From positions 624,030,001 to 624,094,000 of the forward strand of contig NC_067400.1 of the NCBI RefSeq assembly GCF_016432865.1: a DNA stretch of 64,000 bases. The letters are read 5' to 3'. Source of the DNA: Antechinus flavipes (lineage: Eukaryota). Both the position numbers and the translations under genes were made by a program. A model generated the notes under the pieces. That model was not told the origin of the DNA and made no database searches. It worked only from the letters and a program-made list of their open reading frames with translations. Of this stretch, positions 7,838-51,941 are shown piece by piece (within the stretch, counting starts at the first letter, position 1; each line of letters opens with the position of its first letter).

Positions 7838-7870
<33 letters not shown>

Positions 7871-10800
7871 TTTCTGTAATGGTGGAATAGATTTTTCTGT
7901 GAATCTTCAATAATTTATTTGTAAATTTGGTTATTTTGGGGATTTCTTCATTGAGAGTTTACTTATCATTTGAGGTTTTTATGTCCAAATATATGGTCAA
8001 TTTTTGTATAGGTTCCATGAATTGCTGAGAAGAAAGCATACTCCTTTCTGTCTCCATTCAATTTTCTCCAAAGATCTGTCATATCTAACTTTTCTAGTAT
8101 TCTATTTACTTCTTTGACTTCTTTTTATTTATTTTGTGGTTTGATTTATTTAATTATGAGAATGCAAGGTTGAGATCTCCCATTATGATAGTTTTGCTGT
8201 CTATTTCTTCTTGCAGCTCTCTTAATTTGAGAGTTTACTTAGGAATTGGGCAATCTCTTCCCCTACCCCTCACTTCCAAAATTAAGTGATTTAAATGAAC
8301 TATTTTTTGTTCTGTTTTTCTAGGTATTTTTCATTTTTGTAAAAAATTTTCCATTTCATTTAAGTTGTTGGTTTTATTGATATATAGCTGGGTAGAACAG
8401 TTTCTAATATTTTTCTTTATCCTTTTCATGTATTGTGAGGGAAAGCATTTATATAATACCTACTATGTGCCAGGAAGTGTGCTAAGTGCTTTTTAAGAAT
8501 CCTTACAAAAATGTGGGAGATTGGCACTATTTTCATTCTTATTTTAAGTTGAGGAAACTGAGGCAAGCAACAAGTAAGCAATCTTCCCAGGGTCACATGG
8601 CTTTTAAGTAACTGAGGCTGGATTTTAGCTCAGATCTTCTTTCAGACTTCAAGACCAGCACTTTTGTCTACTGTGTACCCTACTATGGACAGCTGTTGTA
8701 AATTCTCCTTTTTTTTGGTAATCTTATTTTCCTTGTTCTTAGACAATTAGACTTGGCTGAAAGATGTAAACAAGGAAGCTACAAGTACCAAAGACATAAA
8801 TTAATATTGACACTAAGCAATACTAAATTATAGTTTTTCTATTTCTCTCTGAAGTTTTTTTTAACTCAAGTATGGGATATTAAATTAATGATTTACATAT
8901 TTTATTGATATTTCCAATTTTTTTCTTAGTTTTATTTATTTTTCTTTTTTTGCTTCCAATTTTGTTACCCCTTTCAATGATTTTCAGATTTTTTTTAAAA
9001 TGGGGTTTTTTAGTTTATTGAATTTTAGGTTTTTCTTAGTTGCCTGCCCAATTCATTAATCTGTTTTTTCTTTATATTGAGAGTTTCTCTGTATTTCTCT
9101 TATGCCCTGCTTTGGCTTCATCTCAAAAATTTTAACTTGATCATCTCTTATTATTCTCTAATAAATTTTAATATTTTCTCCCATCAATATAATTTTATTG
9201 CACTTTAAGTAGCAAAGGAAATTTTTAATTTTTCTAAATTTGTTTGTGATGTTTTTATGTCCTAATACCCATTCAATTTTTGTAAAGGTGTCATGTGAAA
9301 TTGAGAAATATGGCTAGATCTTTCATATTTTATTTTTTAAAACTTCTGTGCAGATCCTTTATTTCATTTTTGTTGCTTTTTGTTTGTTTTCTCTAAGTCT
9401 GAAAGGGATACATTGAAATTCTCCACTTATCATTTTATTGTCTATTTTTCTCTGAAATTCATTTAACTTTTTATTTGAGTCTTGGATATCCCCAAAGTCT
9501 CACTATACTTTTCTGTTATTCAAAACTTAAAACTGCAGACTTTGGGGGTATCCTGTACTTAAGCTAAATAAATTTTAGGGAGAAATAGAACAACTATAAT
9601 TTAGTATGTCACACCTCAACATTAATTTGTTATCTTTGGTACCTGTAGTTTTCATGTTTACATCTTTTTAACCAAGTCTAATTTTACATTCGCCTCATCT
9701 GAGATCATGATTACTATTCCTGGCTTTTTAAACAATTGAGGTGAGGAATAATAACCCCTTATTTTAACTCTGTATGAATTTTTATGATTCCAGTGTCTTT
9801 CCTGTAAATGATATATTATGACATTCTGATTTCTAAAACATTCTAGTATCCTCTTCCACTTTATGAGTGGATTAATCCTTCTTACATATAGCTATAATAT
9901 ATCCCTCTAGCCTTTTCTCAAGCCTTTTCCTCTCTCCCCCTCAGCTCTATCTTTATGAAGAAGAGAGGAGTGAGCAATGAGCAGCACTAATGAATTTTGC
10001 TTGCTGTAATCTTCTTCCACCTCCTTTCCCCAAACAACTAATCATATGCCTTACCTTTTCTTTCTTTTCCTTTAAGTCCTCCAAGGCTGGAGGTTTTTTT
10101 TGTTTTTAGTTATGACTACTATATCTCTGAATTTATCTTCCCTGAAATTTCCCCATTTCCCTTTTTCCCTATCCCATTCTTCTCTATTTTTGCATTGAAC
10201 TGAATGTATTTCTATACCGTACTATATGGGTATACATATTATGACCTTTGACAAGTTCAGATATGAGGTTCAAGTAAAGCCCATCCCCAATCCCTTCCTC
10301 CTTTTTTGTATAGTCTTCTGCTTGTTCATCTAGATTGTATGAAATTGTAAATAAACACACACACACATACACACTCTTATGTAGAATATTCCTTTCCCTT
10401 CCCTTTTCTTCTTTTAAGAGCATCAAAACATTATAAACTATTTCCCAGAACCCTCTTATGTCTATCACAATGACCTGTGGTATTTCTTCTAACACTATTA
10501 ACTGGCATTTACAGAGCACCTTAAGATTTGCAATGTTTTACATTTTATCTCGTTTGATCATCACAAAAATTCTATGAAGAAGATAATTTCCCCTCACTTT
10601 ACAGATGAGGAAACTGAACTAAGAAACATTAAGCAAATAATTCTTTCTATTTGCCCAAATGTAGTTACCTTTTTGTTTGCCTGGGTAGATAGTTTTTGTT
10701 CTAAATCTGTATGTTTTGCCTTTGGTCATATTGTTTATCCAAGCTCTTCTCTCTTTTAGCCCAGAAGCCATCAAATCTTGTGTGATTCTGAAAACAGCTT

Positions 10801-13800
10801 CTCAATGTGTGACCTAATTTTTTTCTTTTCTGGATCCTTGCATCATTTTTTTTTTCTTTGACCTGGAAACTCTAGATTTTGGTGGTGACATTCTGAGATC
10901 TTTTCATTTTAGAATTTCTTTCAAGAATTGATCAGTGAATTATATTTTTCATTTGGCTTTCTCTTTCTAATAGGTCAGAGAAGCTTTCAATTATATCTTA
11001 AAATATGGCATCCAAACTAACTTTTTTGGTTTTGGCTTTCATGTAGTTTAATAATTAAAAAAAAAATTCTCAGTGACCTGTTTTCCAAATCAATTGTTTC
11101 GATATAAAATATCTTATATTTCCTCTCCTTTTTAAAAAAATTTTTTGGCTTTCTTCTAACATATATCCTAGGTCCATGAAGTCATTCACTTCTGTCTTAT
11201 TCATTCTAATTTTGGGGAAATCATTGAATGAGTTAGGTTTATACATAAACTGTTCATTTTCCTTCCAAGACTTTCCTCTAGAGTAGTTCTTCCTTTTCAG
11301 ATTCTTTCCACAAGAGATGTCATTTCATTTATTGGGAGTTCCTAGCTCTGTAACAGCTCTTACGTGAGTGTCTTTATTTTATTTTATTATTCTTTTATTA
11401 TAGCTTTTTATTGACAAAACATATGCATGGGTAATTTTTCAACACTGCTCCTCGCAAAAACTTCTGTTCCAACTTTTCCCCTCTTTCCCTCCACCCTGTC
11501 CTCTAGATGGCAGGTAGTCCCATACATATTAAATTTATTAAAGTATATGTTAAATACAATATATGTATACGTATTTATACAGTTATCTTGCTGCACAAGA
11601 AAAATTGGATTTAGAAAGAAGGTAAAAAATAACTTGGGAAGAAAAACAAAAATGCAAACAAACAATAACAGAAAGAGTGTAAATGCTATGTTGTGGTCCA
11701 CAGTGAGTGTCTTTTTTGTTGTTGTTGTTTATCCTTTCTTTTATCCTTAATCCCAGAATTGAGAGTTTGTGTTAGGGCTACGCTCTGAGCTTTTATGAAA
11801 GCAATGTCTAAATCTTGATGGGTCCTAAATTTATTCTCTTGGAGCCTTTCTCCAGGTATTGATTTCTGTGTTTTCCAAGGATAAAAGAGGTGGCTTAGAA
11901 ACCTTCAAGCTTTTCAGAGCATCTTAAGCAGTCTGAATGTTTGATTGCCACCTTCCTAGACTGAATTTTATACACTCTTGATCCCACTTTGGGTCTGGTT
12001 GAAACTTCTTTAGTCTGGCCCAGAGTTGGAGCACCAGTAAGCTACTTCTGGCCCCAGGCCAGGCTCTGCCAGCTTAGCTAGAAGGGTTTTCAGGAGCAAG
12101 TGACAGACTACAAGTTAGTCTTCATCTTTGCTAGGGCCCCTGCTTCCTCAGCTGTGCTCCTTAGAGCTGAATGTGCAAACCCCAACAGAAGTCAGAACCA
12201 AACAGCAGTCGTTGCCTCCTTTTCCTGCTCTTTGTTCAATGTAACCTTAGGCTTGATTTATACTCATCTGTGACCTTTTTCTCAATGCATTTTATACTAG
12301 TGACCCAGCTTCTGGGTCAACAGACTAGTTTCTGGATCAATGGACCCAGCTGCACAGCTCAGATCACTGTGCCGGATCAGTTCCCATGCTGGAAGGAAGC
12401 ATGCAGATATGTATCTTCCTGACTGAACTCTTCCCATTAATCCCTGGCCTCCGGCTATATACTTTTGCTGACCTTGGCTAGAAAAATTATTTATTAAAGA
12501 GAGATTCTTCAACCAGTTTTCTTGTATTTCCCAATCACTACTTTGTCAGGCGACTTTTCCTTAAGCAATATGGAGCAGTTATGAGATTTCTTCCTATTTT
12601 GGAATCTGCTGATTTCTATTGAATTTCATCTTAAGACCCTTTCGATTATGACTTTGTCATCCATTCTGCTAAATATCTCTTCCAATTTTGTGCCATCTGC
12701 CATTTTGATGAGTATTCCACTTGTACCTTTGCCCAAGTAAGCAATAACATGTTAACCAAATATATACCCCCAGGGGCACTCTGAAAAATCTGTGAAGCAC
12801 TAATCATTAACCATTAAGCTCTTTGAATCTGGTTATCCAACCATGCCTGAATCCATCTATTATTGACTAGTCCACTTTTCCCCATCTTTTTCACAAGAAG
12901 AAGTTGAAGACACTCTATCAAAAGCTTATTAAAATCCCATGAGGAGGAATCGTTAAAATCTATTATTAAAATTATTAAAATCTAAATGAACTGTATCCAT
13001 AGTACTCTCCTCATTTGTCAGGTTAATAATTCAGTCTTAAAAAGAAAATGAGGTTGGCTGAGCCTAACCTGAGCTTGATGAAGCAAGGACGGCTCTTTGT
13101 TTATTTTTTCTTTACCTTTTTTTTTTGGCCAGGCAAGTGGGGCTAAGTAACTTGCCTAAGGTCGCACAGCTAGTAAGAGTTAAAGTTTCAGAGGTCTCAT
13201 TTGAACTCAGGTCCTCTGACTTCAGTGCTGGGGCTGTATCTATTATAGCGCCATCTAGCTGCCTCCTGGGCCGACTCTTTGAAATCACTGCTTCTCTTTC
13301 CATCTCTCTAATGATCCCTTCCAGAATTTTGTCAGAATTCAAAGTCAAGTTCACTGACCTAAAATTGGCAGCTTCTGCTCTCTTTCCTCTGGAAACAGAC
13401 GTTTTGTTGTTCCTCCCTCATTATCCACGATCATTTTTTTCCTGGTCTTTCCACCGCCAAGGCCATTCTTCTTTACAAAAATAAAAAATCAAGAATCGAG
13501 CAGTTACATCCACCATAAATAGAGTTCCTTTTTGAATCCTCCTTTTTTCTACCAATGTAGTTTTTTTTAAAAGATTTTTCAAAATGACTCAACTTCACTT
13601 AGCATTTTCAGCTAGTTGTGGGTTTTATTACTTCTGATGTTACTTTTATAAGATTAAATAGAAGCCATTCCTTATAGTCACCTTCTATTTCCTGATCTTG
13701 CTTCCGCCAGTTGATTGGGGTGTTCCCTGCTCATCTACATACATCTCTTCGGCTAGATGTCACGTTTTGTGAGGAATAACGATTCCTCCTCATGGGAATT

Positions 13801-16800
13801 ATTTCCCTCTGTGTCCTGTGAGTGTCATTCTTGAGCACTTCTCATCCCTCCTAAGGGGCCTTCCCCATCACATTGCAGAGTATGGGATCATATCTTTCTT
13901 TCCTCTGAGTCTTTGGAATTTTTTTTTCTAAATCGTGTTCCTATTAGCTTATTCAGAGGCAGTTAGGGGCAGTCTGTTTGCCTCCGTTTCTTTATCTGTA
14001 AGATGGGTATCAGTAACTCCTGCCTCCTCAGGGTTCTTGTGGGGATCAAATGAGATAATCATCAGAAAGCATGGCGGCTGACACATGCTTAACAAACGTT
14101 TATTTCTCTGCTTTCCCCATGCCCAGAGTCCCCTCCCCTATTGCACATGTCAATTCCCGCAGGCTTCCCACCCTCTTCACCCTGATCCAGAATAGAGCCC
14201 TACTCCCTCCCCCTTGGCTTAAAGGATGAATTGGCCCTAAGGCAAGTCAACAAGGGCTTGGCTTCTGGCAGAGACCGGAGAGAGAGACAGGGAAGAGAAG
14301 GAGCTCTCCAAGGTCTCACTTTCTTCCCCACTCCATGGGTGGTTCCAAGCGCCCCTTCCATGGGCTTTGTTTCTCGTGGGCCCTCGTTACCCTCTCCGAG
14401 CCTCGACTTGGCCAATCTGTGCCCTTTGGCCCTTCCCCCAACCCCCCCCCCACAGCCTTACAAACCTACAAAAATCTCAGAACCTAAAGACTTCCTCGAG
14501 ACCCTCTGATTCAAGACCTTTATTTCAGAGATGGCAGAACTGCAGGTGGGAGAGAAATGACTTTTCCAGAGTTGCACATCGAGTCGGGGGCCAAGGGGGG
14601 GCTGGTGGGGCAAGGGAAAGTACCCTGAAATTCTCCTTTCAGAGAGATGACCAGAGAGTACTTCACATACAAGGGCATCAAATTCCCCACGGGCCTCTAC
14701 TCTCCAGAGACCATAAGTTATGTGGAGAAGGACTTCAAGGTCAGGGATGAGGACATCTTCATTGTCACCTACCCCAAATCAGGTAGGAAGAACTTGGTCC
14801 TGTCCTGGGCCCCCAGAGTAAGGACGCAGACTCCAAAGACTCCATACCCACCCGCTCTCTTTGTCCTCTGACCTCCCTCGGTGTCCCCTCTGACCTCCCT
14901 TGATTCCCCCCGTCACTGTCCTTGACTTTTCTTCTGAGCCCTTTCCTTTTCCTCCATCTTCTCCTCTAGGTACCACTTGGATGATTGAGATTATGAGCGT
15001 AATGCTGAAGGACGGGGATCCCTCCTGGGCCCGCACAGTCCCCAACTGGGAGCGGGCGCCCTGGTGCGAGACCATCCTAGGGTCCTTGTCCATTATGCAG
15101 ATGACCAATCCTCGCCTCATCAGCTCCCACCTTCCCATTCAGCTCTTTCCCCGGGACTTCTTCAACTCCAAAGCCAAGGTAAGCCCGGACCAGTGAGCAT
15201 AAGCAGAGCCCGGTGGAGTCCTAGAGACCCACATTCAAAGTTGGCTTCGGACCCTGAGTATCTGTGGGGCCTGAAATGGGCCATTTCAGTTCTCTGGCCT
15301 CCATGGAGCACTGTGAAGGTCGTGAGGGACCAGGGAAGCACCTTAGGTCCATCAAAAATGCCAGGGTGCTCTGGGGAGCCTGGGGGAGGGTCCGAAGCAG
15401 CAGGGGAGGAAGTCCAAGGTCCATCCCCAGGGTCCCAGGATCTCCTCAGTGGCTGTCCCAATCTTGAGCTCCGTCCCTTCCCTTCTCGGTCTTCCCAGGG
15501 GGCCCTAGTTCTTATTCCCCTGGCTTCCTGGCTGGGGAGGCCAGTTCCTCCCAATGATACGAGAGTTTTCGTTTCCCTGGCCCATTCAGGCGTCCCAATA
15601 ACGGCTAGAGCCGGGCTGAGGCAATCGGGCAGGTGAAGATGGAGGGCTCCGGCCCCAGGTCTCAGACTGTTCCAAGCTGCCCCACCCCCTACTCTTATTA
15701 TGTTTCCCACGACTTCCAGAGATGGAGGGGGGGCTGCTCTGTGACCGAGCCCCCATTGCTTCCCTTAGGTGATCTACATAAGTCGCAACCCCCGAGATGT
15801 TCTGGTTTCCCTCTACCACTACTCCAAGATCGCTGGGCACCTCAAGGACCCCGGGAGCCCGGACCAATTCCTGCAAAATTTTCTCAACGGAGAATGTGAG
15901 GAACTAGCAGGGCAGGGACACGGGTCAGAAGGCTGGAGGGCAGCCACGAACAGGCACAGAGATGGAAGGAAAGTCACGGGAAGGCAGAGAGACCCAGAGG
16001 AGCAGAGATGGAACAGGCAGACAAAAAGCGGGTCAGGCCCCAGCTGAGAGACAAAACTGTATCCAGAGACCAGGAAAAGAGAAAGATAGGGAAACAAGTG
16101 GAAAGGAGGGAAGAGGTAGAAAGAGAAGAGAGGCAGGGAGGAAGAAAGGGAGGGAGGAGGGAGGGAGAGCGAAAGAAGAAGGAGAAGAGGAAGAAGAAGA
16201 AGAAGAAGAAGAAGGAGGAGGAGGAGGAGGAGGAGGAGGAGGAAGGAGAAAAGAAGAGGAAGAAACAGAAAAAAGAAAGGAAGAAGAAAAGAAAAAGAAG
16301 AGGATGATGAAGAAGAAGAGGAGGAAGAAGGAGAAAAGAAGAAGAGGAAGAAACAGAAAAAAGAAAGGAAGAAGAAAAGAAAAAGAAGCAAATGAAGAAG
16401 AAAAGAAGAAAGGAGGAGGAGAAAAAGAAAGGAAGGGTGAGNNNNNNNNNNNNNNNNNNNNNNNNNNNNNNNNNNNNNNNNNNNNNNNNNNNNNNNNNNN
16501 NNNNNNNNNNNNNNNNNNNNNNNNNNNNNNNNNNNNNNNNNNNNNNNNNNNNNNNNNNNNNNNNNNNNNNNNNNNNNNNNNNNNNNNNNNNNNNNNNNNN
16601 NNNNNNNNNNNNNNNNNNNNNNNNNNNNNNNGACTGAAGAACATGGAGAGCTAGTCCAGAGCCCCAGAGAGACGGGAGGGTGAATGAAGAAGTGGCGGCA
16701 GGGCCGTGCAGGTTATCAGGCCCGATGTCGGAGGGGACTGGGGGGGAGGGGCACAGGAGTCCCACGGGCCCATGGGAAGTGAAGAGAGGCGGGGTCCTGG

Positions 16801-26200: not shown

Positions 26201-27930
<1,730 letters not shown>

Positions 27931-27960
27931 GCTGGCGCCCTCCCGAACACCAGCCCAAAC

Positions 27961-28260
27961 AGGAAAGACCGACGAGCCGCGAAGCACGCTGGGAAGGCCA
28001 GCGGAGAGGTCGGCGCGCCTGACGTCGCGACGGGATGGGCGGGCACGTCGCGCGCGACACCGCCTCTCTGGCGCGCACGGCCTCCTCTCTATGGTCGCCC
28101 CTCTATTCGCACGACGAGGGGAGGGGCCGGTGGGTGGCGCAGGGCGGGCGGCGGCGCTCTTGCCTCGTCGGCGTCTCGGTGGTCAGGCACAGCTGGCCTC
28201 AGTGTACGCGGAGCGTACAGACCCTCCCCGGCCCAGGGTGCGGCCCCGCCCTGCCAGCTG
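27961..28260 (-). promoter_or_regulatory. RPL18 TCT/5'TOP core promoter and CpG island
   Basis: Minus-strand TCTTTCC at 27968-27962 matches YC+1TYTYY. CRE-like TGACGTCG at 28020 and palindrome GTCGCGCGCGAC at 28047-28058. Confidence 0.75.
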
Positions 28261-28380
28261 TGTAACCGCAGGCCCGGACCCCCCTCCCCATGCCCGGTCT
28301 GAGCCTGACCCCCCGTGCCACCCCCGGCCCGGCCAAAGTGGTCAGACCGGCCTGGCCAGGCTAGGGGGTGTGGCAGGGTG

Positions 28381-28990
28381 AGGGACGGAGAAAGAGAGAG
28401 ACAGACTCTGGGAAAAACAGATTGTGGGTGAGGGAGCACAGGGGGGCTGTGAGGGAGAGACCGCGGGACGGAGAAAGGGGAGAAGGAGCTCCGGAGAGAC
28501 ACGGGGACAGGGAGAGACGCTGAGGGCGCGTAGAGAAGGGGTTGTGGGGGAGGCAGAGGCCAAAGGGAGCGAGGGAGAGACAGACTGGGAAGGCAGACAC
28601 CAAGGGGAGAAGGTGAGGCAGAGAGACAGAGACTAGGAGAAGACGGGCGGGTGTGAGGGGGAGCCAGACAGAAAAGGGGGCGGGGAGAGACACTAATGGC
28701 GCATCTAAGGCAGGGACACTGAGGCAGAATCAAGAGACACAGAGAAACCGAGGCAAAGCCCGAGAGGCAGGAGGAGGTGAGGAACAGAGCCGGGTGGGGG
28801 AGGCAGCAAGGCGGGGGCTGCTTAAGATCGGCCCGAGATCCAGGCAGGAAGAGAGAGCTTGAAGCAGAAACAAGAGCAGAGAGCCTAAGGACAAAGACAG
28901 AGACCACGAGAGGGCAATAGAGGCAGAGGCTGAGACAGAAGGAAAGAGAGAAACAACAGCAGCAAAGGGCCAGAAACAGAAACAAGCCGA
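28381..28990 (+). repeat. GA-rich low-complexity tract
   Basis: GAGACAGAGA-type purine runs on the plus strand. Confidence 0.75.
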
Positions 28991-29859
28991 GTTCAGCCTC
29001 CTCCTGCCCTCAGAGCCCATCTCGCTGTCAGGGCCCGGACCCTCCATTCCCGCCCTGCATCTCCACAAGCTGAGCCTGAGAGCAAGTGTCCAGAGAGAAA
29101 CAGCCAGCCCCCTGCTGCCCCTAGGCCCAGGTCTGAGGAAATGCTGGCTGAGCGGGAAGGGTGGCTGGGGAGGTTTCTCTTCTGCCCTCTTGGAGAGTAG
29201 CTAAAGTGACTCCGTCTCTCCAGGGTCTGACCCCTCGACCCCCTTTTGTCGCTCTCCGTCAACATGGTTATTTTTCTCTCTGAGGTTCTTATGGTCACGT
29301 CCGACTCTCCATGACCCCGGTTGGGGGTTCCTTGACAAAGATACTGGAAAGATTTCCCCTTTCCTTCTATGACTCATTTTACGGATTTAGAAACCGAGGC
29401 AAACAGGCTGAAGCTCACAGCCAAAATCGCACAGTCGGGGTCTAAGGCCATGTGCTTGTGCACCATGGCGCCATCTAGCCGTGGATAGAGTCCCGTAATA
29501 CTCCCGGCCCCCCTGCCGTGTGACCTTAGGCTGGTCCTTTCCTCTGAGCTGTGACTCCTGGCGGGGGATTGTTCGGCCGCCTTGGTGCGCTGTGGGTAGG
29601 GAGGAGCCAGGGACCCGTCTGCTTCTTTATGTTCTTGCAATACTCAGCCCTGCACCGGTGCCGCCGCTGCGCCCAAAGGCGGTTTCCCTGCCCTGGGCTC
29701 CCCGGGAATGTGAGCCCCCCCCCCCCCCAGGGCTCCCCCGCCCGCTTTCGGCCACACCGCCCTTCTCGGCTGCCTGTGGGCGGCCTCTGTTTCCCTGACT
29801 CAGCGTCTGTCACTCTCAGGCTCTCGGGCTCTCTCCTCTCTCTCTGTCTCCTGTTCTGC

Positions 29860-29990
29860 TGAGACAAATGGGATTAGGTGACTGGCCCAGGGTCACACAC
29901 GTACAAGTTTTCAGTGTCTGAGATCAGATTTGAACTCAGCTCCTCCTGACTTTAGGGCTGGTGCTCTTTCCACTGCGCCACCCAGCGGCC
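29860..29990 (-). mobile_element. WSINE1/MAR1-like SINE abutting the left edge of the tandem array
   Basis: Reverse complement GGGCCGCTGGGTGGCGCAGTGGAAAGAGCACC...GAGTTCAAATC; its 5' end is about 10 bp from the first monomer. Confidence 0.85.
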
Positions 29991-29999
29991 CATAGGGTC

Positions 30000-32900
30000 T
30001 TTCAGGCTTTTATTCTCTCAGGGTCCCTGTTTCAGGCTTTTAGTCTCTCAGGGTCCCTGTTTCATGGTCTCTGTTTTAGACTTTCAGTCTCTCAGGGTCT
30101 CTTTTTTCAGGCTTTTAGTCTCTCAGGGTCCCTATTTCAGGCTTTTATTCTCTCAGGGTCCCTGTTTCAGGCTTTTATTCTCTCAGGATCCCTGTTATAG
30201 GGTTTTATTCTCTCAGGGTCCCTGTTTCAGGCTTTTAGTCTCTCAGGGTCCCTGTTTCAGGCTTTTAGTTTCTCAGGGTCCCGGTTTCAGGGTCTCTGTT
30301 TTAGACTTTCAGCCTCTCAGGGTCTCTTTTTCAGGCTTTTAGTCTCTCAGGGTCCCTATTTCAGGCTTTTATTCTCTCAGGGTCCCTGTTTCAGGCTTTT
30401 AGTTTCTCAGGGTCCCTGTTTCATGGTCTCTGTTTTAGACTTTCAGCCTCTCAGGGTCTCTTTTTCAGGCTTTTATTCTCTCAGGGTCCCTGTTTCAGGC
30501 TTTTAGTCTCTCAGGGTCCCTGTTGCAGGCTTTTAGTCTCTCAGGGTCCCTGTTGCAGGCTTTTAGTGTCTCAGGGTCCCTGTTTCATGGTCTCTGTTTT
30601 AGACTTTCAGTCTCTCATGGTCTCTTTTTCAGGCTTTTAGTCTCTCAGGGTCTCTTTTTTCAGGCTTTTAGTCTCTCAGGGTCCTGTTTCAGGGTCTTTG
30701 TTTTAGACTTTCAGCCTCTCAGGGTCTCTTTTTCAGGCTTTTAGTCTCTCAGGGTCCCTATTTCAGGCTTTTATTCTCTCAGGGTCCCTGTTTCAGGCTT
30801 TTAGTTTCTCAGGGTCCCTGTTTCATGGTCTCTGTTTTAGACTTTCAGCCTCTCAGGGTCTCTTTTTCAGGCTTTTATTCTCTCAGGGTCCCTGTTTCAG
30901 GCTTTTAGTCTCTCAGGGTCCCTGTTTCAGGCTTTTAGTCTCTCAGGGTCCCTGTTTCAGGCTTTTAGTGTCTCAGGGTCCCTGTTTCATGGTCTCTGTT
31001 TTAGACTTTCAGTCTCTCATGGTCTCTTTTTCAGGCTTTTAGTCTCTCAGGGTCTCTTTTTTCAGGCTTTTAGTCTCTCAGGGTCCCTGTTTCAGGGTCT
31101 TTGTTTTAGACTTTCAGCCTCTCAGGGTCTCTTTTTCAGGCTTTTAGTCTCTCAGGGTCCCTATTTCAGGCTTTTATTCTCTCAGGGTCCCTGTTTCAGG
31201 CTTTTAGTTTCTCAGGGTCCCTGTTTCATGGTCTCTGTTTTAGACTTTCAGCCTCTCAGGGTCTCTTTTTCAGGCTTTTAGTCTCTCAGGGTCCCTATTT
31301 CAGGCTTTTATTCTCTCAGGGTCCCTGTTTCAGGCTTTTAGTTTCTCAGGGTCCCTGTTTCATGGTCTTTGTTTTAGACTTTCAGCCTCTCAGGGTCTCT
31401 TTTTCAGGCTTTTAGTCTCTCAGGGTCCCTATTTCAGGCTTTTATTCTCTCAGGGTCCCTGTTTCAGGCTTTTAGTTTCTCAGGGTCCCTGTTTCATGGT
31501 CTCTGTTTTAGACTTTCAGCCTCTCAGGGTCTCTTTTTCAGGCTTTTATTCTCTCAGGGTCCCTGTTTCAGGCTTTTAGTCTCTCAGGGTCCCTGTTTCA
31601 GGCTTTTAGTCTCTCAGGGTCCCTGTTATAGGGTTTTAGTTTCTCAGGGTCCCTGTTTCAGGGTCTTTGTTTTAGACTTTCAGTCTCTCAGAGTCTCTTT
31701 TTCAGGCTTTTAGTCTCTCAGGGTCTCTTTTTCAGGCTTTTATTCTCTCAGGGTCCCTGTTATAGGGTTTTATTCTCTCAGGGTCCCTGTTATAGGGTTT
31801 TAGTCTCTCAGGGTCCCTGTTTCAGGCTTTTATTCTCTCAGGGTCCCTGTTTCAGGCTTTTAATTTCTCAGGGTCCCTGTTTCAGGGTCTCTGTTTTAGA
31901 CTTTCAGCCTCTCAGGGTCTCTTTTTCAGGCTTTTAGTCTCTCAGGGTCCCTATTTCAGGCTTTTATTCTCTCAGGGTCCCTGTTTCAGGCTTTTATTCT
32001 CTCAGGATCCCTGTTATAGGGTTTTATTCTCTCAGGGTCCCTGTTTCAGGCTTTTAGTCTCTCAGGGTCCCTGTTTCAGGCTTTTAGTTTCTCAGGGTCC
32101 CGGTTTCAGGGTCTCTGTTTTAGACTTTCAGCCTCTCAGGGTCTCTTTTTCAGGCTTTTAGTCTCTCAGGGTCCCTGTTTCAGGGTCTCTGTTTTAGACT
32201 TTCAGCCTCTCAGGGTCTCTTTTTCAGGCTTTTAGTCTCTCAGGGTCCCTATTTCAGGCTTTTATTCTCTCAGGGTCCCTGTTTCAGGCTTTTAGTTTCT
32301 CAGGGTCCCTGTTTCATGGTCTCTGTTTTAGACTTTCAGCCTCTCAGGGTCTCTTTTTCAGGCTTTTAGTCTCTCAGGGTCCCTATTTCAGGCTTTTATT
32401 CTCTCAGGGTCCCTGTTTCAGGCTTTTAGTCTCTCAGGGTCCCTGTTTCAGGCTTTTAGTCTCTCAGGGTCCCTGTTATAGGGTTTTAGTTTCTCAGGGT
32501 CCCTGTTTCAGGGTCTTTGTTTTAGACTTTCAGTCTCTCAGAGTCTCTTTTTCAGGCTTTTAGTCTCTCAGGGTCTCTTTTTCAGGCTTTTATTCTCTCA
32601 GGGTCCCTGTTATAGGGTTTTATTCTCTCAGGGTCCCTGTTATAGGGTTTTATTCTCTCAGGGTCCCTGTTATAGGGTTTTAGTCTCTCAGGGTCCCTGT
32701 TTCAGGCTTTTAATTTCTCAGGGTCCCTGTTTCAGGGTCTCTGTTTTAGACTTTCAGCCTCTCAGGGTCTCTTTTTCAGGCTTTTAGTCTCTCAGGGTCC
32801 CTATTTCAGGGTTTTATTCTCTCAGGGTCCCTGTTTCAGGCTTTTAGTGTCTCAGGGTCCCTGTTTCATGGTCTCTGTTTTAGACTTTCAGTCTCTCATG

Positions 32901-35430
32901 GTCTCTTTTTCAGGCTTTTAGTCTCTCAGGGTCTCTTTTTCAGGCTTTTAGTCTCTCAGGGTCCCTGTTTCAGGGTCTCTGTTTTAGACTTTTAGTCTCT
33001 CAGGGTCCCTATTTCAGGCTTTTAGTCTCTCAGGGTCCCTATTTCAGGCTTTTATTCTCTCAGGGTCCCTGTTTCAGGCTTTTAGTTTCTCAGGGTCCCT
33101 GTTTCATGGTCTCTGTTTTAGACTTTCAGCCTCTCAGGGTCTCTTTTTCAGGCTTTTAGTCTCTCAGGGTCCCTATTTCAGGCTTTTATTCTCTCAGGGT
33201 CCCTGTTTCAGGCTTTTAATCTCTCAGGGTCCCTGTTTCAGGCTTTTAGTCTCTCAGGGTCCCTGTTATAGGGTTTTAGTTTCTCAGGGTCCCTGTTTCA
33301 GGGTCTTTGTTTTAGACTTTCAGTCTCTCAGAGTCTCTTTTTCAGGCTTTTAGTCTCTCAGGGTCTCTTTTTCAGGCTTTTATTCTCTCAGGGTCCCTGT
33401 TATAGGGTTTTATTCTCTCAGGGTCCCTGTTATAGGGTTTTATTCTCTCAGGGTCCCTGTTATAGGGTTTTAGTCTCTCAGGGTCCCTGTTTCAGGCTTT
33501 TAGTCTCTCAGGGTCCCTGTTTCAGGCTTTTAATTTCTCAGGGTCCCTGTTTCAGGGTCTCTGTTTTAGACTTTCAGCCTCTCAGGGTCTCTTTTTCAGG
33601 CTTTTAGTCTCTCAGGGTCCCTATTTCAGGGTTTTATTCTCTCAGGGTCCCTGTTTCAGGCTTTTAGTGTCTCAGGGTCCCTGTTTCATGGTCTCTGTTT
33701 TAGACTTTCAGTCTCTCATGGTCTCTTTTTCAGGCTTTTAGTCTCTCAGGGTCCCTGTTTCAGGGTCTCTGTTTTAGACTTTCAGCCTCTCAGGGTCTCT
33801 TTTTCAGGCTTTTAGTCTCTCAGGGTCCCTATTTCAGGCTTTTATTCTCTCAGGGTCCCTGTTATAGGGTTTTAGTCTCTCAGGGTCCCTGTTTCAGGCT
33901 TTTATTCTCTCAGGGTCCCTGTTATAGGGTTTTAGTCTCTCAGGGTCCCTGTTTCAGGCTTTTATTCTCTCAGGGTCCCTGTTATAGGGTTTTAGTCTCT
34001 CAGGGTCCCTGTTTCAGGCTTTTAGTTTCTCAGGGTCCCTGTTTCAGGGTCTCTGTTTTAGACTTTCAGCCTCTCAGGGTCTCTTTTTCAGGCTTTTAGT
34101 CTCTCAGGGTCCCTATTTCAGGCTTTTATTCTCTCAGGGTCCCTGTTATAGGGTTTTAGTTTCTCAGGGTCCCTGTTTCAGGCTTTTATTCTCTCAGGGT
34201 CCCTGTTATAGGGTTTTAGTCTCTCAGGGTCCCTGTTTCAGGCTTTTAGTTTCTCAGGGTCCCTGTTTCAGGGTCTTTGTTTTAGACTTTCAGTCTCTCA
34301 GAGTCTCTTTTTCAGGCTTTTAGTCTCTCAGGGTCTCTTTTTCAGGCTTTTAGTCTCTCAGGGTCCCTGTTTGAGGCTTTCAGTCTCTCAGGGTCTCTTT
34401 TTCAGGCTTTTAGTCTCTCAGGGTCCCTGTTTCAAGCTTTTAGTCTCTCAGGGTCCCTGTCTCAGGGTCTCTGTTTTAGACTTTCAGTCTCTCAGGGTCT
34501 CTTTTTCAGGCTTTTAGTCTCTCAGGGTCCCTGTTTCAGGCTTTTAGTGTCTCAGGGTCCCTGTTTCAGGCTTTTATTATCTCAGGGTCCCTGTTATAGG
34601 GTTTTAGTCTCTCAAGGTCCCTGTTTCAGGCTTTTAGTCTCTCAGGGTCCCTGTTTCAGGCTTTTAGTTTCTCAGGGTCCCTGTTTCAGGGTCTCTGTTT
34701 TAGACTTTCAGTCTCTCAGAGTCTCTTTTTCAGGCTTTTAGTCTCTCAGGGTCTCTTTTTCAGGCTTTTATTCTCTCAGGGTCTCTGTTTTAGACTTTCA
34801 GTCTCTCAGGGTCTCTTTTTCAGGCTTTTAGTCTCTCAGGGTCCCTGTTATAGGGTTTTAGTCCTCAGGGTCCCTGTTATAGGCTTTTAGTCTCTCAGGG
34901 TCCCTGTTTCAGGCTTTTATTATCTCAGGGTCCCTGTTATAGGGTTTTAGTCTCTCAAGGTCCCTGTTTCAGGCTTTTAGTCTCTCAGGGTCCCTGTTTC
35001 AGGCTTTTAGTTTCTCAGGGTCCCTGTTTCAGGGTCTCTGTTTTAGACTTTCAGTCTCTCATGGTCTCTTTTTCAGGCTTTTAGTCTCTCAGGGTCTCTT
35101 TTTCAGGCTTTTATTCTCTCAGGGTCCCTGTTATAGGGTTTTATTCTCTCAGGGTCCCTGTTATAGGGTTTTATTCTCTCAGGGTCCCTGTTTCAGGCTT
35201 TTATTCTCTCAGGGTCCCTGTTATAGGGTTTTAGTCTCTCAGGGTCCCTGTTTCAGGCTTTTATTCTCTCAGGGTCCCTGTTTCAGGCTTTTATTGTCTC
35301 AGGGTCCCTGTTGCAGGCTTTTATTGTCTCAGGGTCCCTGTTGCAGGCTTTTATTCTCTCAGGGTCCCTGTTTCAGGCTTTTAGTCTCTCAGGGTCCCTG
35401 TTATAGAGTTTTAGTCTCTCAGGGTCCCTG
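30000..35430. repeat. Large 30-bp minisatellite/satellite array with higher-order structure (about 165-170 monomers plus about 30 14-bp half-units)
   Basis: Consensus TTTCAGGCTTTTAGTCTCTCAGGGTCCCTG. Variants include ..TTTTATTCTC.., TTATAGGGTTTT.. and TTTTAGACTTTCAGCCTCTCAGGGTCTCTT; half-unit TTTCA(G/T)GGTCTCTG. Counts are hand estimates. Confidence 0.99.
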
Positions 35431-35600
35431 TTTCAGGGTCTCTGTTTCAGGATCTCTGGTCTGTTTCAGGGTCTCTGTCTGTTTCAGGATCTCTGGTCTG
35501 TTTCAGGGTCTCTGTCTGTTTCAGAATCTCTGGTCTGTTTCAGGGTCTCTGTCTGTTTCACGGTCTCTGGTCTGTTTCAGGGTCTCTGGTCTGTTTCAGA
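35431..35600. repeat. 18/19-bp repeat tail of the array
   Basis: TTTCAGGATCTCTGGTCTG alternating with TTTCAGGGTCTCTGTCTG. Confidence 0.92.
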
Positions 35601-35869
35601 CTTCCAGGCGCTCTGCAGCTGCCTGAATTGCTTTTCTAGCTTGACTTTCTACATCTATCTGCTCCTGCCTCTGGGTCTCTTTCTTGCTCGGTGTCTCTGA
35701 ATCTTCCTGACGGTGCTCTCCATCTTGTTTTGTTTGTCTCGGCCTCTCTGTGTTTGTCCTGCGGCATCACTCACAGACCTTTGGATCTGAAGAGATCTCT
35801 GCAGCTGAATCTCTCTCTGCGTGTCTGTGTGTCTGTCACCCTACAGGCCGGCCTCTCCTGGGGTAGGGC

Positions 35870-36175
35870 CAGCCGTTCAGGAGAAAGGCGCCTGCGCGGG
35901 CACCGCCCATAGCAAAAATGGCGGCTACAGCTCGCAACCTCCAGTTATGGCGCTGCTTCTCGCGAGAGTCGCACAACCTTCTGCCGGTCAGGCCGGCCGG
36001 AGCCCCGCCCTCTCCGCGATCTTAATGGTTCATCTAAGCCAGGCCTATACTTCAATTGGCTTAAATTCCACACACCTTCCTCCCACCCCTTACCCTCCCC
36101 ACAGTCCTCAGGACCGAAGCGGGAAGGCCGGGCCGGGAGGGGGCGGGACTTCCGGGTGTGAGAGGAGGCGGGGTC
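35870..36175. promoter_or_regulatory. CpG-island housekeeping-type promoter, probably for SPHK2
   Basis: YY1 AAAATGGCGGC at 35915-35925, palindrome TCTCGCGAGA (BANP/ZBTB33-associated) at 35958-35967, ATTGG near 36055, GC box, and ETS ACTTCCGG at 36148-36155. Confidence 0.75.
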
Positions 36176-36189
36176 AGAGATACTGACAC

Positions 36190-36555
36190 TGAGCAGAGAT
36201 TGAGGGGGAGACGGAGCTTGAGAGACACGGAGACTACGAGAGACTCAGAGACTGAGAATGATGCTCAGACTAAAGAGACTGTTATAGAGACGCAGAGATT
36301 GGGAGACACAGAGAGACAGAGATTGATGAGACTTGGAGAGACAATAACGAGACAGAGACTTGGAGAGACAATAGACTGGGGGAGAGAGAGACTTGGATGG
36401 ACAACTTAGGGACGGGGGAGACAGACTCGGAGAGACAATAACTTAGAGACGGCGCGAACACTGGGGGAGACAGACTTTGGGAGAAAATAACTTAGAGACT
36501 GGGGGAGGCAGAGACTTGGAGAGACAATAACTTGGAGACTGGGGGAGACAGAGAC
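36190..36555 (+). repeat. Degenerate purine-rich minisatellite
   Basis: Recurring GAGACTTGGAGAGACAATAAC(TT)AGAGACTGGGGGAGACA. Confidence 0.8.
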
Positions 36556-37508
36556 CACTCAACTTGGGCTGGGTGTCAGGGAGAGGAGATGAGACACTGA
36601 GGGCGCCCGAGACCACTATGACGGGGGAGGAGCCGGGACGGAGCTAGAGCCTTCGGGAGCCTTGACCCGGGCTGGCCCTTGGGGAGCCCGCGGGGATGGG
36701 GGCCTGACGCTGGAGCTGCCGGATCCAGGAGGGTGAGAGGCCTCTGGGCCTGCCAGGCAGAGGGCGTGGCGGGGGCTGGGAAAGGAGGAGCAAAGGTCAG
36801 GTCTGGGGCTGGGTGGGGCGGGGGCGGGCCGCGGGTGGGTGTCCCAGCCAGAGCAGGACCTTGGCCAGAGACATTCGGGGCACCCAGGTCAGTGCTGCCC
36901 CAGCCCACTCCCTGGGGCCTTCCTGCTGCAGTCCCTGAGCGCTGGCCAGACCCAGCTGCTTCTCTGGCACTCTCCAGCTCGCCCGGCTCTCCGGCTGGCC
37001 CTCGGCCCTTGGGTGTCAAAGTCCTCTGGCTCCTTGTCCCTGTGTTGTCCTGCCCATCACTGGGCTCTCTGGGTTCTAGTTTCTGTCTTTCTCTCTTGCC
37101 ATCCTCATGCTGGGCCGTGGGGATGGGGGGGTTGGGGGGGCCTCCTGACCCTGTTCTCTCCTCATGTCTGGCTCTGAGAGGCTTTTCAGTACCCCCCTCC
37201 CCTTGGGTCTCTCTCCTTGGCCTTGGGGTGGGGGCAGAGGCCCTTTGGCCTTGACTTCTTCGTGGGGGCCTTGGGGGCAAGGAGCTCGAGAGATGGGGTC
37301 ACAACAGGGTGGGCCCCAAAGGAGCGCAGGCCTTCAGAGGCTGCTGCCTGGTGCGGGTGTGCGGGAAGGGCCAGACCCTCCAGGTCTTCCCCCAGCCTGG
37401 CCCTAACCTCCCTCCCTCTGTCCCTGCAGATCCTGGCCTTTGGGAAGAGCTGAGCTGACCTCGCCCTGATCCCCAGGCAGCCCAGGCCAGGTGGGGCTGG
37501 GTGGGGCC

Positions 37509-40500
37509 ATGGCAGGCACCCCACTCCTGCATGGGGAGTTTGGCTCCTATCCGGCCCGAGGCCCCCGCTTTGCGCTGACACTCACCCCAGTGGCCTTGCA
37601 TGTGCAGCGGCTGCGCCCCAGACCGGAGGCCTGGCCCCAGGGGGGCCTGGTCCCTCTGGCTGAGGTCTCCGGTTGCCGGACCTTGCGCAGCTGCTCCCCT
37701 AACGACTCTGCTGCTTACCTGTGTGTCTACACTTATCCCCGGGGCCGGCGGGGGGGCCGCCGGCGGGCAGCTCGGACCTTCCGGGCTGACCGGGCCCCCG
37801 ACTACAAGGAGAATCACGCAGAAGCCCAGCGCTGGGCCACTGCTCTCACCTGCCTACTTCGAGGGGTGCCCTTGCCTGGGGACCTTGGTGAGCTGCAGGG
37901 CCAGGGTGGGCACAGGCCACCCGGGGGGAGGGAGTCCAGAAGGAACATGGGGGCTCCAGGTGGATGAGCGGGACCTGGGTTCACAGGGGAACGGAGTGAG
38001 AGGTCAGGGCCTGAGGAGATGGATGCTGGGGGCAGGCCTAGAGCCCCTGGAAGGGGGGGTGCCCATGAGTGGGGGACATGGAAGGGCCGAGAGCCTGCCG
38101 CAGGGAGGGGGGCAAAGATGGGGGTGACCCGAGCAGAGGAGTCCGGAGCCCCCGGTGGAAGGGCCCCCAGGAGGGAGAGGCCGAAGCCTGAGGAGCCCAG
38201 GAAGAAACACACCAGAGGGGCTGTTGGCTTGCTGCGCGCTCCACCTGGGGCCTGTCTGTGTCTGCCTCTCCCGGAGGGTCTATCCCCCTCTCTGTGTGTG
38301 TCTCTCTCCCTCTCGGTGTCTCTGTCTCTGTGTCTCTCCCAGACACACACACACAGACACAGCTGACTCTGCAGCTCTTTGTGTTTCTGCATTTCTGAGG
38401 GCAGACACCCAGGAGCCCCAAGAGGGTGGGCCCCAAACCCCATCCGTGGGGCTGGAACAGAGGCCTTTTGGCCCTAGGAGTCTCTGTCCCCCCCACTTCC
38501 AAGGCTGGCTTCTTTACACTCCCCCAGCCCTCCTCTGGGTGCCTGCCCCCCACCCTCATGGGGGGGATGGCTACAGGGGTGGGGAGCGATCCTGTGGCCT
38601 GGGAGGACTCCCTCTCAGTCTTTCTGTCTCCCCACCTGCCTCCCAGGGCTCTCTTTCTGTCTGGGTGATTGAACACCTGGGGATTAGGTGGGTGGGTCGC
38701 TGTAAGCCAAGAACAATTAGCTCCCCTTTCTCTGCCCACAACACCCCCACGTCTGGGCCGGGCGCCAGGACACCTGGGTCCAAAGAACGGAGGCGATGAA
38801 ATATCAGCCCTCCCCATTGTTCCCCGTTGGGGTGGGTGGTGTGGGAGATGCTGGGGCCTGGGAGGGGAGGGGGTAGGGGGGAAGGGAAGAGGATGCCAGG
38901 GCCTGCCTCAGAGAGAAGGGTCACGTGGGCGCCTGGGGGTCTCCAGAGGGTGGGCAGGGAGAACCTGGAACCACAACTCCCAGCGGGCCTGGGCTCGCCG
39001 GGCTCCCTGCCGGAGGGAGCTGGGCCCCGAAGCCTTCTGGGAGTTGTAGTGTCTCGCTTCCAGGACGGTTGACACCTTTTGTTGTCCCTTTGCGCCAGAG
39101 ATCACACCGGAGCTCTTGCCCCGGCCCCCGCGGCTGCTCCTATTGGTCAATCCCTTTGGGGGGCGGGGCCTGGCCTGGCAATGGTGTAAGAACCACGTGC
39201 TGCCTATGATTTCCGAAGCGGGCCTTTCCTTCAACCTCATCCAGACGGGTGAGCTCGGGTCTGGTGGGGGTGGGGGTGCCGGGGACCTCGAGGCGGGGCG
39301 AAGGGCGGCTGGCTGGGGCCCGTCCCCCTCTCACGCGTCCGGGCGCTCCTCTCCCCAGAGCGGCAGAACCACGCCCGGGAGCTGGTGCAGGGGCTGCGCC
39401 TGAACGAGTGGGACGGGATCGTCACCGTCTCCGGGGACGGCCTCCTGTACGAGGTGAGTTGGGACCGGGGCCCCTGCGGCCGAGCTGGGGGCCCGGGCAG
39501 CCCCCCCCTCAGCCTCCCGGGGCCCGGGAAGCCCCCCCTCAGCCTCCCGGGGCCCGGGCAGCCCCCCCCCCCTCAGCCTCCCGGGGCCCGGGCAGCCGTC
39601 CCCCCCCCCCCCCCCCCCCCCCCCGCCCGCCTCTTGGGGCACCCACGCAGCCTCCGTCTGCCCACAGGTGGTGAACGGGCTCCTGGACCGGCCAGACTGG
39701 GAGGAAGCCGTGAAGATCCCGGTGGGAGTCCTGCCCTGCGGCTCCGGCAACGCTCTGGCTGGAGCCATCAATCAGCATGGGGGGTAGGCAGGGGGCCTCC
39801 CCTTGGGCTCCTCCCTCCCGGCCCGTGGGTCAGGATGTCTCGGCAGCTCCGCCCCTTCCCTCCCTCTCCGGCAGGTTCGAGCCCGCCATCGGCCTAGATC
39901 TGCTGCTCAACTGCTCCCTGCTCATGTGCCGCGGGGGCGGCTCCCCGCTGGACCTGCTCTCGGTCACCCTGGCCTCCGGAGCCCGCTGCTTCTCCCTCCT
40001 CTCCGTGGCCTGGGGTTTCGTGTCCGACGTGGACATTCAGAGCGAGCGCTTCCGGGTCCTGGGCCCGGCCCGGTTCACCCTAGGCACGGTGCTTCGGCTG
40101 GCTTCCCTCCACGTCTACCCGGGCCGTCTCTCCTACCTCCCGGCCTCCCCCCCGGCCTCCAACGGCCCCCCGGCTGCACCCCAGCCCCTTCCCCGCGCTG
40201 CCTCCGAGCTGGCCCTGGCCCCGGCCCCGGCTTCGGCCCCTTCGCCAGAAACACACTCCCCCTTGCACCGCTCTGTGTCAGACCTGCCTCTGGCCCGAGG
40301 GCCGGACTTCCCCCGTGGGCCCCAGGAAGACCCCTCGCCCTCCCCGCCCCCTTCCCCAGGGCCCTGCCTCCTGTCCCCTGACCCGCCCCTCCCCCCTGGG
40401 CCTCCCTCCCTGGGCCACAGCCCCCCGGGCTCTCCGGCCTCTCAGACAGGGGCCTCCTGTGGGCTCCCTCCCTCAGAAGGGCCTCGGGAACCCCCGGCCC

Positions 40501-41075
40501 CCATGAAGGCCCCGGCGTCCCCCGACACACAGACTTCCCCGGATCCCGCGGCTTCTCCCGATTCGGAGTCCCCTGCCCCCGGGACCCTCCACGGCCCCAA
40601 GGATGACCTGTTGCCCCCCCTTGGCTCCCCGCTGCCCCCAGGCTGGGTGACCCTGGAGGGTGACTTTGTGTTGATCCTGGCGCAGTCCCCGAGCCACCTG
40701 TGCGCTGACCTGGTGGCGGTCCCCAATGCCCGGTTTGGGGACGGGCTGGTGCACTTGTGCTGGGTTCGAGGAGGGGTTTCCAGGGCCTCCCTGCTGCGAC
40801 TCTTTCTGGCCATGGAGAAGGGGGGCCACTTTGGCCTGGGCTGTCCCCAGCTAGGCTACGCTACCGCTCGAGCCTTCCGCCTGGAGCCGCTCACGCGCCA
40901 CGGCATCCTCACAGTGGACGGGGAACAGGTGGAGTACGGGCCTCTCCAGGCCCAGATTCACCCCGGCCTGGGGACCCTGCTCACAGGTCCCGAGGCCCCG
41001 GGATCCCAGCTGGCCGGGGGGGAGGCCTGGGGGCCCAAGTGTGGCCCGGTCCCCTGGGGAGGGGGCAAAGTCTAG
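37509..41075 (+). CDS. SPHK2: Sphingosine kinase 2, 5 coding exons, 646 aa
   Basis: Exons 37509-37887, 39099-39248, 39359-39453, 39668-39783, 39875-41075; total 1941 nt. Motifs LLVNPFGG, SGDGLLYEV, LPCGSGNAL, SDVDIQSE and VDGEQV; basic NLS RGRRGGRRR. The acceptor of the first coding exon is at 37430. Confidence 0.96.
39494..39600. repeat. ~33-bp C-rich minisatellite in an SPHK2 intron, followed by a poly-C run
   Basis: GGGCAGCCCCCCCCTCAGCCTCCCGGGGCCC repeated 3-4 times. Confidence 0.85.

Positions 41076-46118: not shown

Positions 46119-51941
<5,823 letters not shown>

Follow-up and report, generated by a model that had tools for sequence, protein, structure and literature searches.

Separate promoters for RPL18 and SPHK2 probably predate the minisatellite array between them in Antechinus flavipes

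The window analyzed here is a stretch of 64,000 nucleotides from the yellow-footed antechinus, Antechinus flavipes, a dasyurid marsupial. It contains the divergent genes RPL18 (minus strand) and SPHK2 (plus strand), the latter a sphingolipid-signalling and drug-target gene. Two CpG-rich patches, designated island A on the RPL18 side and patch B on the SPHK2 side, lie between the coding exons of the two genes and are separated by a 5.6-kb minisatellite array. The favoured explanation, to which we assign a probability of roughly 0.7, is that the patches represent two promoters of ancient origin, independent of each other, and that the array has only lengthened the rapidly evolving spacer between them. 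An earlier note, made from the letters of this DNA alone, had interpreted the arrangement as a bidirectional promoter split in two. The anatomy that it described and the promoter-like nature of patch B are retained here, but the split of a shared promoter is not.

The window was compared with the corresponding loci, each with 10-kb flanks, of the Tasmanian devil (L002), the fat-tailed dunnart (L003), the platypus (L004), the beaver (L005) and the pangolin (L011). The opossum and Gracilinanus contributed gene spacing only, no DNA, and stand outside the sequence comparisons. The gene order FAM83E-RPL18(-)-SPHK2(+)-DBP-CA11 is identical in all loci as far as the flanks extend, and the window aligns collinearly with the devil and dunnart loci. 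A search of the literature on the RPL18/SPHK2 promoter layout revealed nothing apart from one paper in which YY1 is reported to bind the human SPHK2 promoter and to activate it; the human start concerned is not stated (PMC10759737).

Two separate CpG islands

The features of the two islands and their immediate surroundings are as follows.

27318..28365, unstranded: CpG island A, comprising the RPL18 promoter, 5' exon, intron 1 and upstream elements; an unbroken 1048-bp Gardiner-Garden run
27465-27553, minus strand: RPL18 exon 2, which together with later exon pieces matches the Pfam domain Ribosomal_L18
27930..27967, minus strand: RPL18 exon 1, with a start of the terminal oligopyrimidine (TOP) type at the C of CTTTCC at 27967 and the ATG at 27930-27932
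35600..35860, plus strand: pyrimidine-rich unique flank (33% purine), upstream of patch B
35850..36175, plus strand: patch B, the conserved putative SPHK2 promoter module (P2), recognized by its motifs and conservation
36150..36300, plus strand: the most conserved stretch of the region (identity of 95-98% with devil and 87-96% with dunnart), the probable start-site zone and beginning of SPHK2 exon 1
36190..36555, plus strand: purine-rich tract B (72.1% purine), with 16-40-bp repeats, within the SPHK2 5' non-coding exon

Island A has a GC content of 0.70 and a CpG observed/expected ratio (o/e) of 0.91 over positions 27400-28250, and qualifies as a CpG island under both the Gardiner-Garden and the Takai-Jones definitions. 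The TOP motif, 35 nt upstream of the RPL18 ATG and kept in devil and dunnart, coincides with the TCT start that the earlier note had placed at about 27967, and its C is the presumed cap site. A C followed by a pyrimidine run, a short 5' untranslated region (UTR) and a ribosomal-protein product are the hallmarks of TOP ribosomal-protein promoters, and RPL18 displays all three. Upstream elements include a cAMP response element (CRE; TGACGT) at 28020 and a GC box at 28037, and the segment 27850-28100 is 91-97% identical to devil and dunnart. To the right of the RPL18 start, the island continues for about 400 bp. The GenBank model of devil RPL18 (L002 3623-5753) has a 318-aa product that extends beyond the real ATG into the promoter, and looks over-extended.

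Patch B is much more compact. The 306 bp of 35870-36175 have a GC content of 0.63, an o/e of 0.79 and 24 CpGs, and belong to a 441-bp Gardiner-Garden run (35753-36193), that is, a small CpG island by the thresholds of at least 200 bp, GC of at least 0.5 and o/e of at least 0.6. All of the motif classes reported by the earlier note were located in it: a YY1-type AAAATGGCG at 35915 (+), TCTCGCGAGA at 35958, GC boxes at 35903 (-), 36005 (-) and 36141 (+), a CCAAT box (box 2) at 36055 (-), and an ETS site, CCGGAAGT, at 36148 (-). A CACACC element occupies 36071-36076, and the position of CCAAT box 1 is held in Antechinus by a degenerate AATGG (36024-36028). In 20,000 composition-matched first-order Markov sequences, all five motif classes never occurred together within 306 bp. 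Devil, dunnart, beaver and platypus retain an intact CCAAT box 1, which has been independently mutated in the pangolin (ACTGG, L011 ~11235).

A set composed of an NF-Y double CCAAT, GC box, ETS, YY1 and TCTCGCGAGA is the standard make-up of a housekeeping core promoter. Patch B resembles housekeeping-type CpG-island promoters in being TATA-less and CpG-rich, in its inverted CCAAT pair about 32 bp apart, in the GC boxes and ETS site near the probable start with the YY1-type ATGGCG and TCTCGCGAGA upstream, and in the purine-rich, GC-skewed 5' exon that follows. It differs from them in its very small size (~0.45 kb) and in the mutation of one CCAAT box in Antechinus.

The RPL18 start and patch B are 7.9-8.1 kb apart with the array between them, consistent with the distance of about 8 kb noted before, and each island is indeed followed on the plus strand by a GA-rich tract (tract A and tract B). 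Both islands and both purine tracts were also considered as duplicates of one another and rejected, as they share no repeat beyond short GAGAGAC-type words. A true inverted repeat flanking patch B was likewise discarded, the only candidate being a 17-nt arm at 88%.

Patch B keeps its distance to SPHK2 across mammals

Over 35840-36260 the three dasyurids (Antechinus, devil and dunnart) are 94% identical. Sliding identity peaks over 36100-36300, at 95-98% with devil and 87-98% with dunnart, and drops on either side; just upstream of the block, identity to the dunnart (Sminthopsis) is 42-68%. The core of patch B is alignable in six mammals, beaver, pangolin and platypus included, in the order ATGGCG, GC box, inverted CCAAT, 31-32 bp, inverted CCAAT, about 12 bp, CACACC and a C/T-rich run. 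Each of the six loci, 23-26 kb in length, contains a single instance of the signature ATTGG-N8-14-CACACC. Distances from this signature, measured from its CCAAT box 2, to the codons for LLHGEFG in the first coding exon of SPHK2 and to the RPL18 start are listed below.

Antechinus: signature to LLHGEFG codon 1469 bp; RPL18 start to signature ~8088 bp
Devil: signature to LLHGEFG codon 1447 bp; RPL18 start to signature ~3170 bp
Dunnart: signature to LLHGEFG codon 1269 bp; RPL18 start to signature ~4290 bp
Beaver: signature to LLHGEFG codon 1741 bp; RPL18 start to signature ~3310 bp
Pangolin: signature to LLHGEFG codon 1741 bp; RPL18 start to signature ~2730 bp
Platypus: signature to LLHGEFG codon 1098 bp; RPL18 start to signature ~5370 bp

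In all six mammals the module is thus found 1.1-1.7 kb upstream of the LLHGEFG codon, and it accompanies SPHK2 rather than RPL18. In every locus compared, the interval from the RPL18 to the SPHK2 coding exons contains two distinct CpG-rich patches. Because the distance from patch B to SPHK2 is nearly fixed while that to RPL18 varies, the separation of the islands must be older than the array, and the comparison suggests that it is probably older than therian mammals.

The base composition of the strands switches at patch B. In all six species the plus strand from +100 to +300 of CCAAT box 2 has a purine content of 69-77% and a GC skew of +0.43 to +0.51; from -500 to -300, the five therians have a purine content of 28-31%. 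Such a switch is the pattern expected of a CpG-island promoter that reads rightward.

SPHK2 5' exons in devil and eutherian RNA

The exons of SPHK2 in the window are the following.

36501..36732, plus strand: SPHK2 non-coding exon 1, minimum extent, by orthology with positions 2-249 of devil contig L001; donor GT at 36733-36734
36733..37429, plus strand: SPHK2 intron 1, 697 nt
37430..37886, plus strand: SPHK2 exon 2, where the coding sequence begins (ATG at 37509; MAGTPLLHGEF)
39098-39247, 39358-39456, 39671-39784 and 39876-41075, plus strand: later SPHK2 exons, matching DAGK_cat/YegS_C

Exon 1 is documented by RNA of the devil. The last exon led to a 637-aa SPHK2 protein (P0003) that is encoded by a Logan RNA contig of 2731 nt, L001. 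The identity of L001 to the devil genome is 98% in the 5' exon and 99.8-100% in the coding exons and the 3' UTR, which marks it as devil RNA. Its first ~233 nt align to 36501-36732 at 87.7%, and the next base corresponds to the junction at 37429/37430. The contig also covers the 3' part of tract B. The devil exon lies 350-600 bp downstream of the patch B core and is spliced to the first coding exon, and the donor context is kept in Antechinus, devil and dunnart.

The eutherian contigs display a different 5' structure. Pangolin RNA contig L012, which maps at 100% to its own genome, has an exon 1 that begins within the RPL18 island, at a distance of at least 290 bp from the TOP motif of RPL18; exons 2 and 3 follow within 1.5 kb, ahead of the canonical first coding exon. 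In rabbit, five RNA contigs (L006-L010) have a common 5' UTR, the distal part of which maps to an RPL18-proximal position in beaver. Conservation of the three pangolin upstream exons in beaver is 72-76%, and no counterpart of them could be detected in platypus or the three dasyurids, with the caveat that UTR exons can diverge beyond recognition. In the long pangolin isoform of SPHK2 (654 aa), translation begins in upstream exon 3 (L011 9883-10039), 1.5 kb from the RPL18 ATG, so that in this species some of the eutherian upstream exon sequence codes for protein.

The mammalian locus in general comprises two promoter-like elements: one next to RPL18, at which the eutherian contigs begin, and the deeply conserved patch B. 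No species among those compared has been shown to use both. The earlier note had started from the closely spaced, divergent 5' ends of human RPL18 and SPHK2; this layout is matched in non-human eutherians (pangolin, rabbit/beaver). In dasyurids the documented SPHK2 5' exon lies beyond patch B.

The search of the SPHK2 and RPL18 models was conducted exon by exon, and exons were assigned separately. Over 39876-41072, the last SPHK2 exon matches the entry 'sphingosine kinase 2 isoform X2 [Antechinus flavipes]' with 100% identity, and a protein search with the first coding exon (37512-37880) returned fragments only, with identities of at most 87%. Isoform X2 (P0001, NCBI) begins with an internal Met encoded in exon 3 (39098-39247; MISEAGLSFN). 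This implies an annotated transcript that lacks the canonical ATG exon, through exon skipping or the use of another 5' end. Near the start exon of this isoform, at ~39000-39500, the sequence is CpG-rich. Between later SPHK2 exons, positions 39488-39628 contain a 34-bp GC-rich repeat in 3.5 copies and then a 29-nt C homopolymer.

A spacer filled by lineage-specific repeats

The spacer between island A and patch B is occupied by the following repeats.

28381..28990, plus strand: purine-rich tract A, a degenerate tandem repeat (77.5% purine)
29858..29995, plus strand: 3' half of a presumed marsupial MIR-like short interspersed element (SINE), judged by its resemblance to the marsupial SINE consensus, adjoining the array start; a second presumed piece lies at ~29290-29440
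30000..35437, plus strand: 30-bp minisatellite in 168 copies, called by Tandem Repeats Finder (TRF), pyrimidine-rich on the plus strand
35441..35599, plus strand: 19/37-bp tandem repeat in 8.5 copies, the oldest layer of the array, also present in devil and dunnart

A block at 29250-29350, which overlaps the second SINE piece, is 84-90% identical in devil and dunnart, above its surroundings. The 5.6 kb of 30000-35599 contain three CpGs, and the 30-bp and 19-bp units show higher-order periodicity. The counterpart in devil measures 1.4 kb (L002 6650-8112) and consists of 43.7 copies of the 30-bp unit (6678-7969) and the 19-bp repeat (7957-8099). In dunnart the equivalent region is ~0.1 kb (L003 8223-8332), composed of a 16/19-bp repeat only (8223-8321) and devoid of the 30-bp unit. 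With 168, 43.7 and 0 copies of that unit in Antechinus, devil and dunnart, respectively, the array behaves as a minisatellite, or variable number tandem repeat (VNTR).

Tract A also varies among the dasyurids. In dunnart it is a 1.8-kb purine-rich minisatellite with a 116-bp unit in ~15 copies (L003 4989-6793), compared with 0.6 kb in Antechinus, and the devil is devoid of ~820 bp equivalent to 28100-28950, all of tract A included (L002 5597-5705), with no Ns at the junction. This segment, immediately past the upstream promoter elements of RPL18, is present in both Antechinus and dunnart. Different dasyurids thus enlarge the spacer by different repeats.

The array resembles the promoter-proximal VNTRs of mammalian intergenic spacers in its short units, its higher-order periodicity and a copy number that varies greatly between related species. 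It differs from them in being situated exactly between two active-looking promoters and in its strand asymmetry. On its minus strand there are 46 AATAAA signals at an even density (5-9 per kb), with no concentration toward patch B, and its plus strand carries 128 acceptor-like TTTCAGG and zero GGTRAG donors. On the plus strand of 27968-35599 there is no AATAAA or ATTAAA, and one strong donor-like site is found at 28610. The minus-strand signals would stop antisense transcripts leaving patch B, and an insulating role is possible. A hidden protein gene in the spacer was considered and discarded: its open reading frames are chance ones in GC-rich DNA, none longer than 298 aa, and the devil and dunnart loci have no gene call at this place.

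Elsewhere in the window, a second inverted CCAAT-type pair of similar spacing occurs at 46178-46214, in a CpG-rich region past SPHK2 where DBP is expected, and 190 N in a run at 16442-16631 represent an assembly gap or masked sequence.

Weighing the alternatives

Several observations weigh against patch B as the SPHK2 promoter. It is small and falls outside the Takai-Jones definition (at least 500 bp, GC of at least 0.55, o/e of at least 0.65): the 401 bp of 35800-36200 have an o/e of 0.68 but are too short, and the 933 bp to the donor have an o/e of 0.60. Antechinus no longer has CCAAT box 1 (ATTGG has become AATGG). At its 5' side, L001 breaks off within 36-40-bp repeats, which reflects an assembly break, not a mapped start, and the devil 5' exon could in principle be an internal exon; an acceptor-like pyrimidine tract followed by CAG is present at 36070-36106 and is kept in dasyurids. 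The pangolin and rabbit SPHK2 contigs begin beside RPL18, and the counterpart of patch B (11000-11500 in pangolin) is intronic in these transcripts. As the eutherian contigs start beside RPL18, patch B is not the sole SPHK2 promoter in mammals.

These last points would fit a conserved intronic regulatory element (an enhancer, insulator or splice-regulatory sequence) in place of a promoter, with the devil exon 1 internal to a longer transcript. We regard this as improbable, given that the motif set is, by established knowledge, typical of housekeeping core promoters, that CpG retention and the strand-composition switch fall exactly at patch B in all species, and that no upstream exon is detectable. 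A better-placed alternative, still possible rather than probable and compatible with the favoured reading, is that Antechinus SPHK2 has two alternative promoters, namely patch B and an RPL18-coupled P1 in island A whose transcript reads across tract A and the array. It draws on the RPL18-proximal start of the pangolin exons (~290 bp from the TOP start), on the equivalent position of the rabbit contigs in beaver, on the ~400-bp rightward extension of island A, on the GC-skewed purine tract that follows island A in Antechinus and dunnart as it does in beaver and pangolin, on a plus strand free of poly(A) signals with the donor-like site at 28610, and on isoform X2, an annotated sign of more than one 5' structure. 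Rightward output of island A may consist of upstream-antisense RNA or of an alternative SPHK2 first exon. Against a P1 in Antechinus stand the missing counterparts of the eutherian exons in the three dasyurids and platypus, the ~820-bp gap in devil, the sole dasyurid RNA contig, L001, which has no upstream junction, and the 128 TTTCAGG without a GGTRAG, which would act as decoys for any transcript that crosses the array.

The proposal that array expansion decoupled a single bidirectional promoter is the least tenable of all, and we consider it very unlikely. The array does occupy 5.6 of the 8 kb between the islands, and eutherian SPHK2 5' exons do lie near RPL18. In dunnart, however, the islands are 4.3 kb apart with almost no array (~0.1 kb of repeat), and in devil they are 3.2 kb apart with an array of 1.4 kb. 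The array-free beaver, pangolin and platypus have the patch B core 3.3, 2.7 and 5.4 kb from RPL18, respectively. The constancy of patch B's distance to the SPHK2 coding exon, and not to RPL18, and the lack of common sequence between the islands argue in the same direction. The cross-species alignment that the earlier note had proposed was run, and revealed separate islands with the same core motifs in devil, dunnart, beaver, pangolin and platypus. The islands are kilobases apart in species devoid of the array, and separated islands with the same motifs in other mammals are what that note had itself named as refuting the split.

The Antechinus locus shares with eutherian bidirectional pairs of the RPL18/SPHK2 type the gene order, the divergent orientation and the conserved RPL18 island with its TOP start. 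In such pairs, however, opposite starts are less than about 1 kb apart, whereas here RPL18 starts at 27967 and the documented SPHK2 exon occupies 36501-36732, at least 8.2 kb away (~3.6 kb in devil). Nor is there a shared CpG island, the runs at 27318-28365 and 35753-36193 being divided by 5.6 kb of CpG-poor array. The eutherian upstream exons, moreover, have no recognisable equivalent in Antechinus.

Proposed arrangement of the locus

In the favoured arrangement of two old promoters and a variable spacer, island A would serve as the TOP-type promoter of RPL18 and read leftwards, and patch B (35850-36300) would be a small TATA-less promoter of the NF-Y/Sp1/ETS/YY1/TCTCGCGAGA type that drives SPHK2. 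Transcription of SPHK2 is anticipated to start downstream of the GC-box/ETS pair, at ~36150-36250; the activity of patch B and the exact start in Antechinus are predicted from sequence and orthology. The transcript would run through the purine-rich non-coding exon 1 to 36732, as in the orthologous devil exon, and be spliced to the first coding exon at 37430, as at the orthologous devil junction.

The dasyurid spacer would meanwhile accumulate tandem repeats; tract A is large in dunnart and of moderate size in Antechinus, and the devil has lost it. The pyrimidine-rich repeat is likely to have grown from the old CT-rich flank upstream of patch B, to lengths of ~0.1, 1.4 and 5.6 kb in dunnart, devil and Antechinus, respectively. 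This origin is proposed because the 19-bp layer is common to the three dasyurids and because short similarities to the beaver flank are apparent by eye. Expansion in Antechinus would have stretched a non-coding spacer of 3-4 kb to 8 kb, roughly doubling it, and the array is presumably lineage-specific filler without a role. The arrangement is an ordinary one: a pair of separate promoters and a lineage-specific repeat expansion.

A more far-reaching scenario can be offered tentatively, and we consider it rather doubtful. Patch B would be the ancestral mammalian SPHK2 promoter, exclusive in dasyurids, and the eutherian coupling to RPL18 would be derived, through recruitment of new exons from the RPL18 island. 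The untranscribed dasyurid spacer would then be free to fill with strand-asymmetric minisatellites, which would act as a one-way terminator and splice decoy against promoter interference.

Current understanding of promoter biology is unchanged by these results. What appeared to be a torn housekeeping promoter becomes an ordinary locus with an old promoter pair and a repeat-prone spacer. The comparison also provides a hint that eutherians and marsupials differ in the first exons of SPHK2, and a growth series of a minisatellite, at 0.1, 1.4 and 5.6 kb, inside one marsupial family. At its centre is a compact putative SPHK2 promoter module whose motif order has been kept through the whole of mammalian history.

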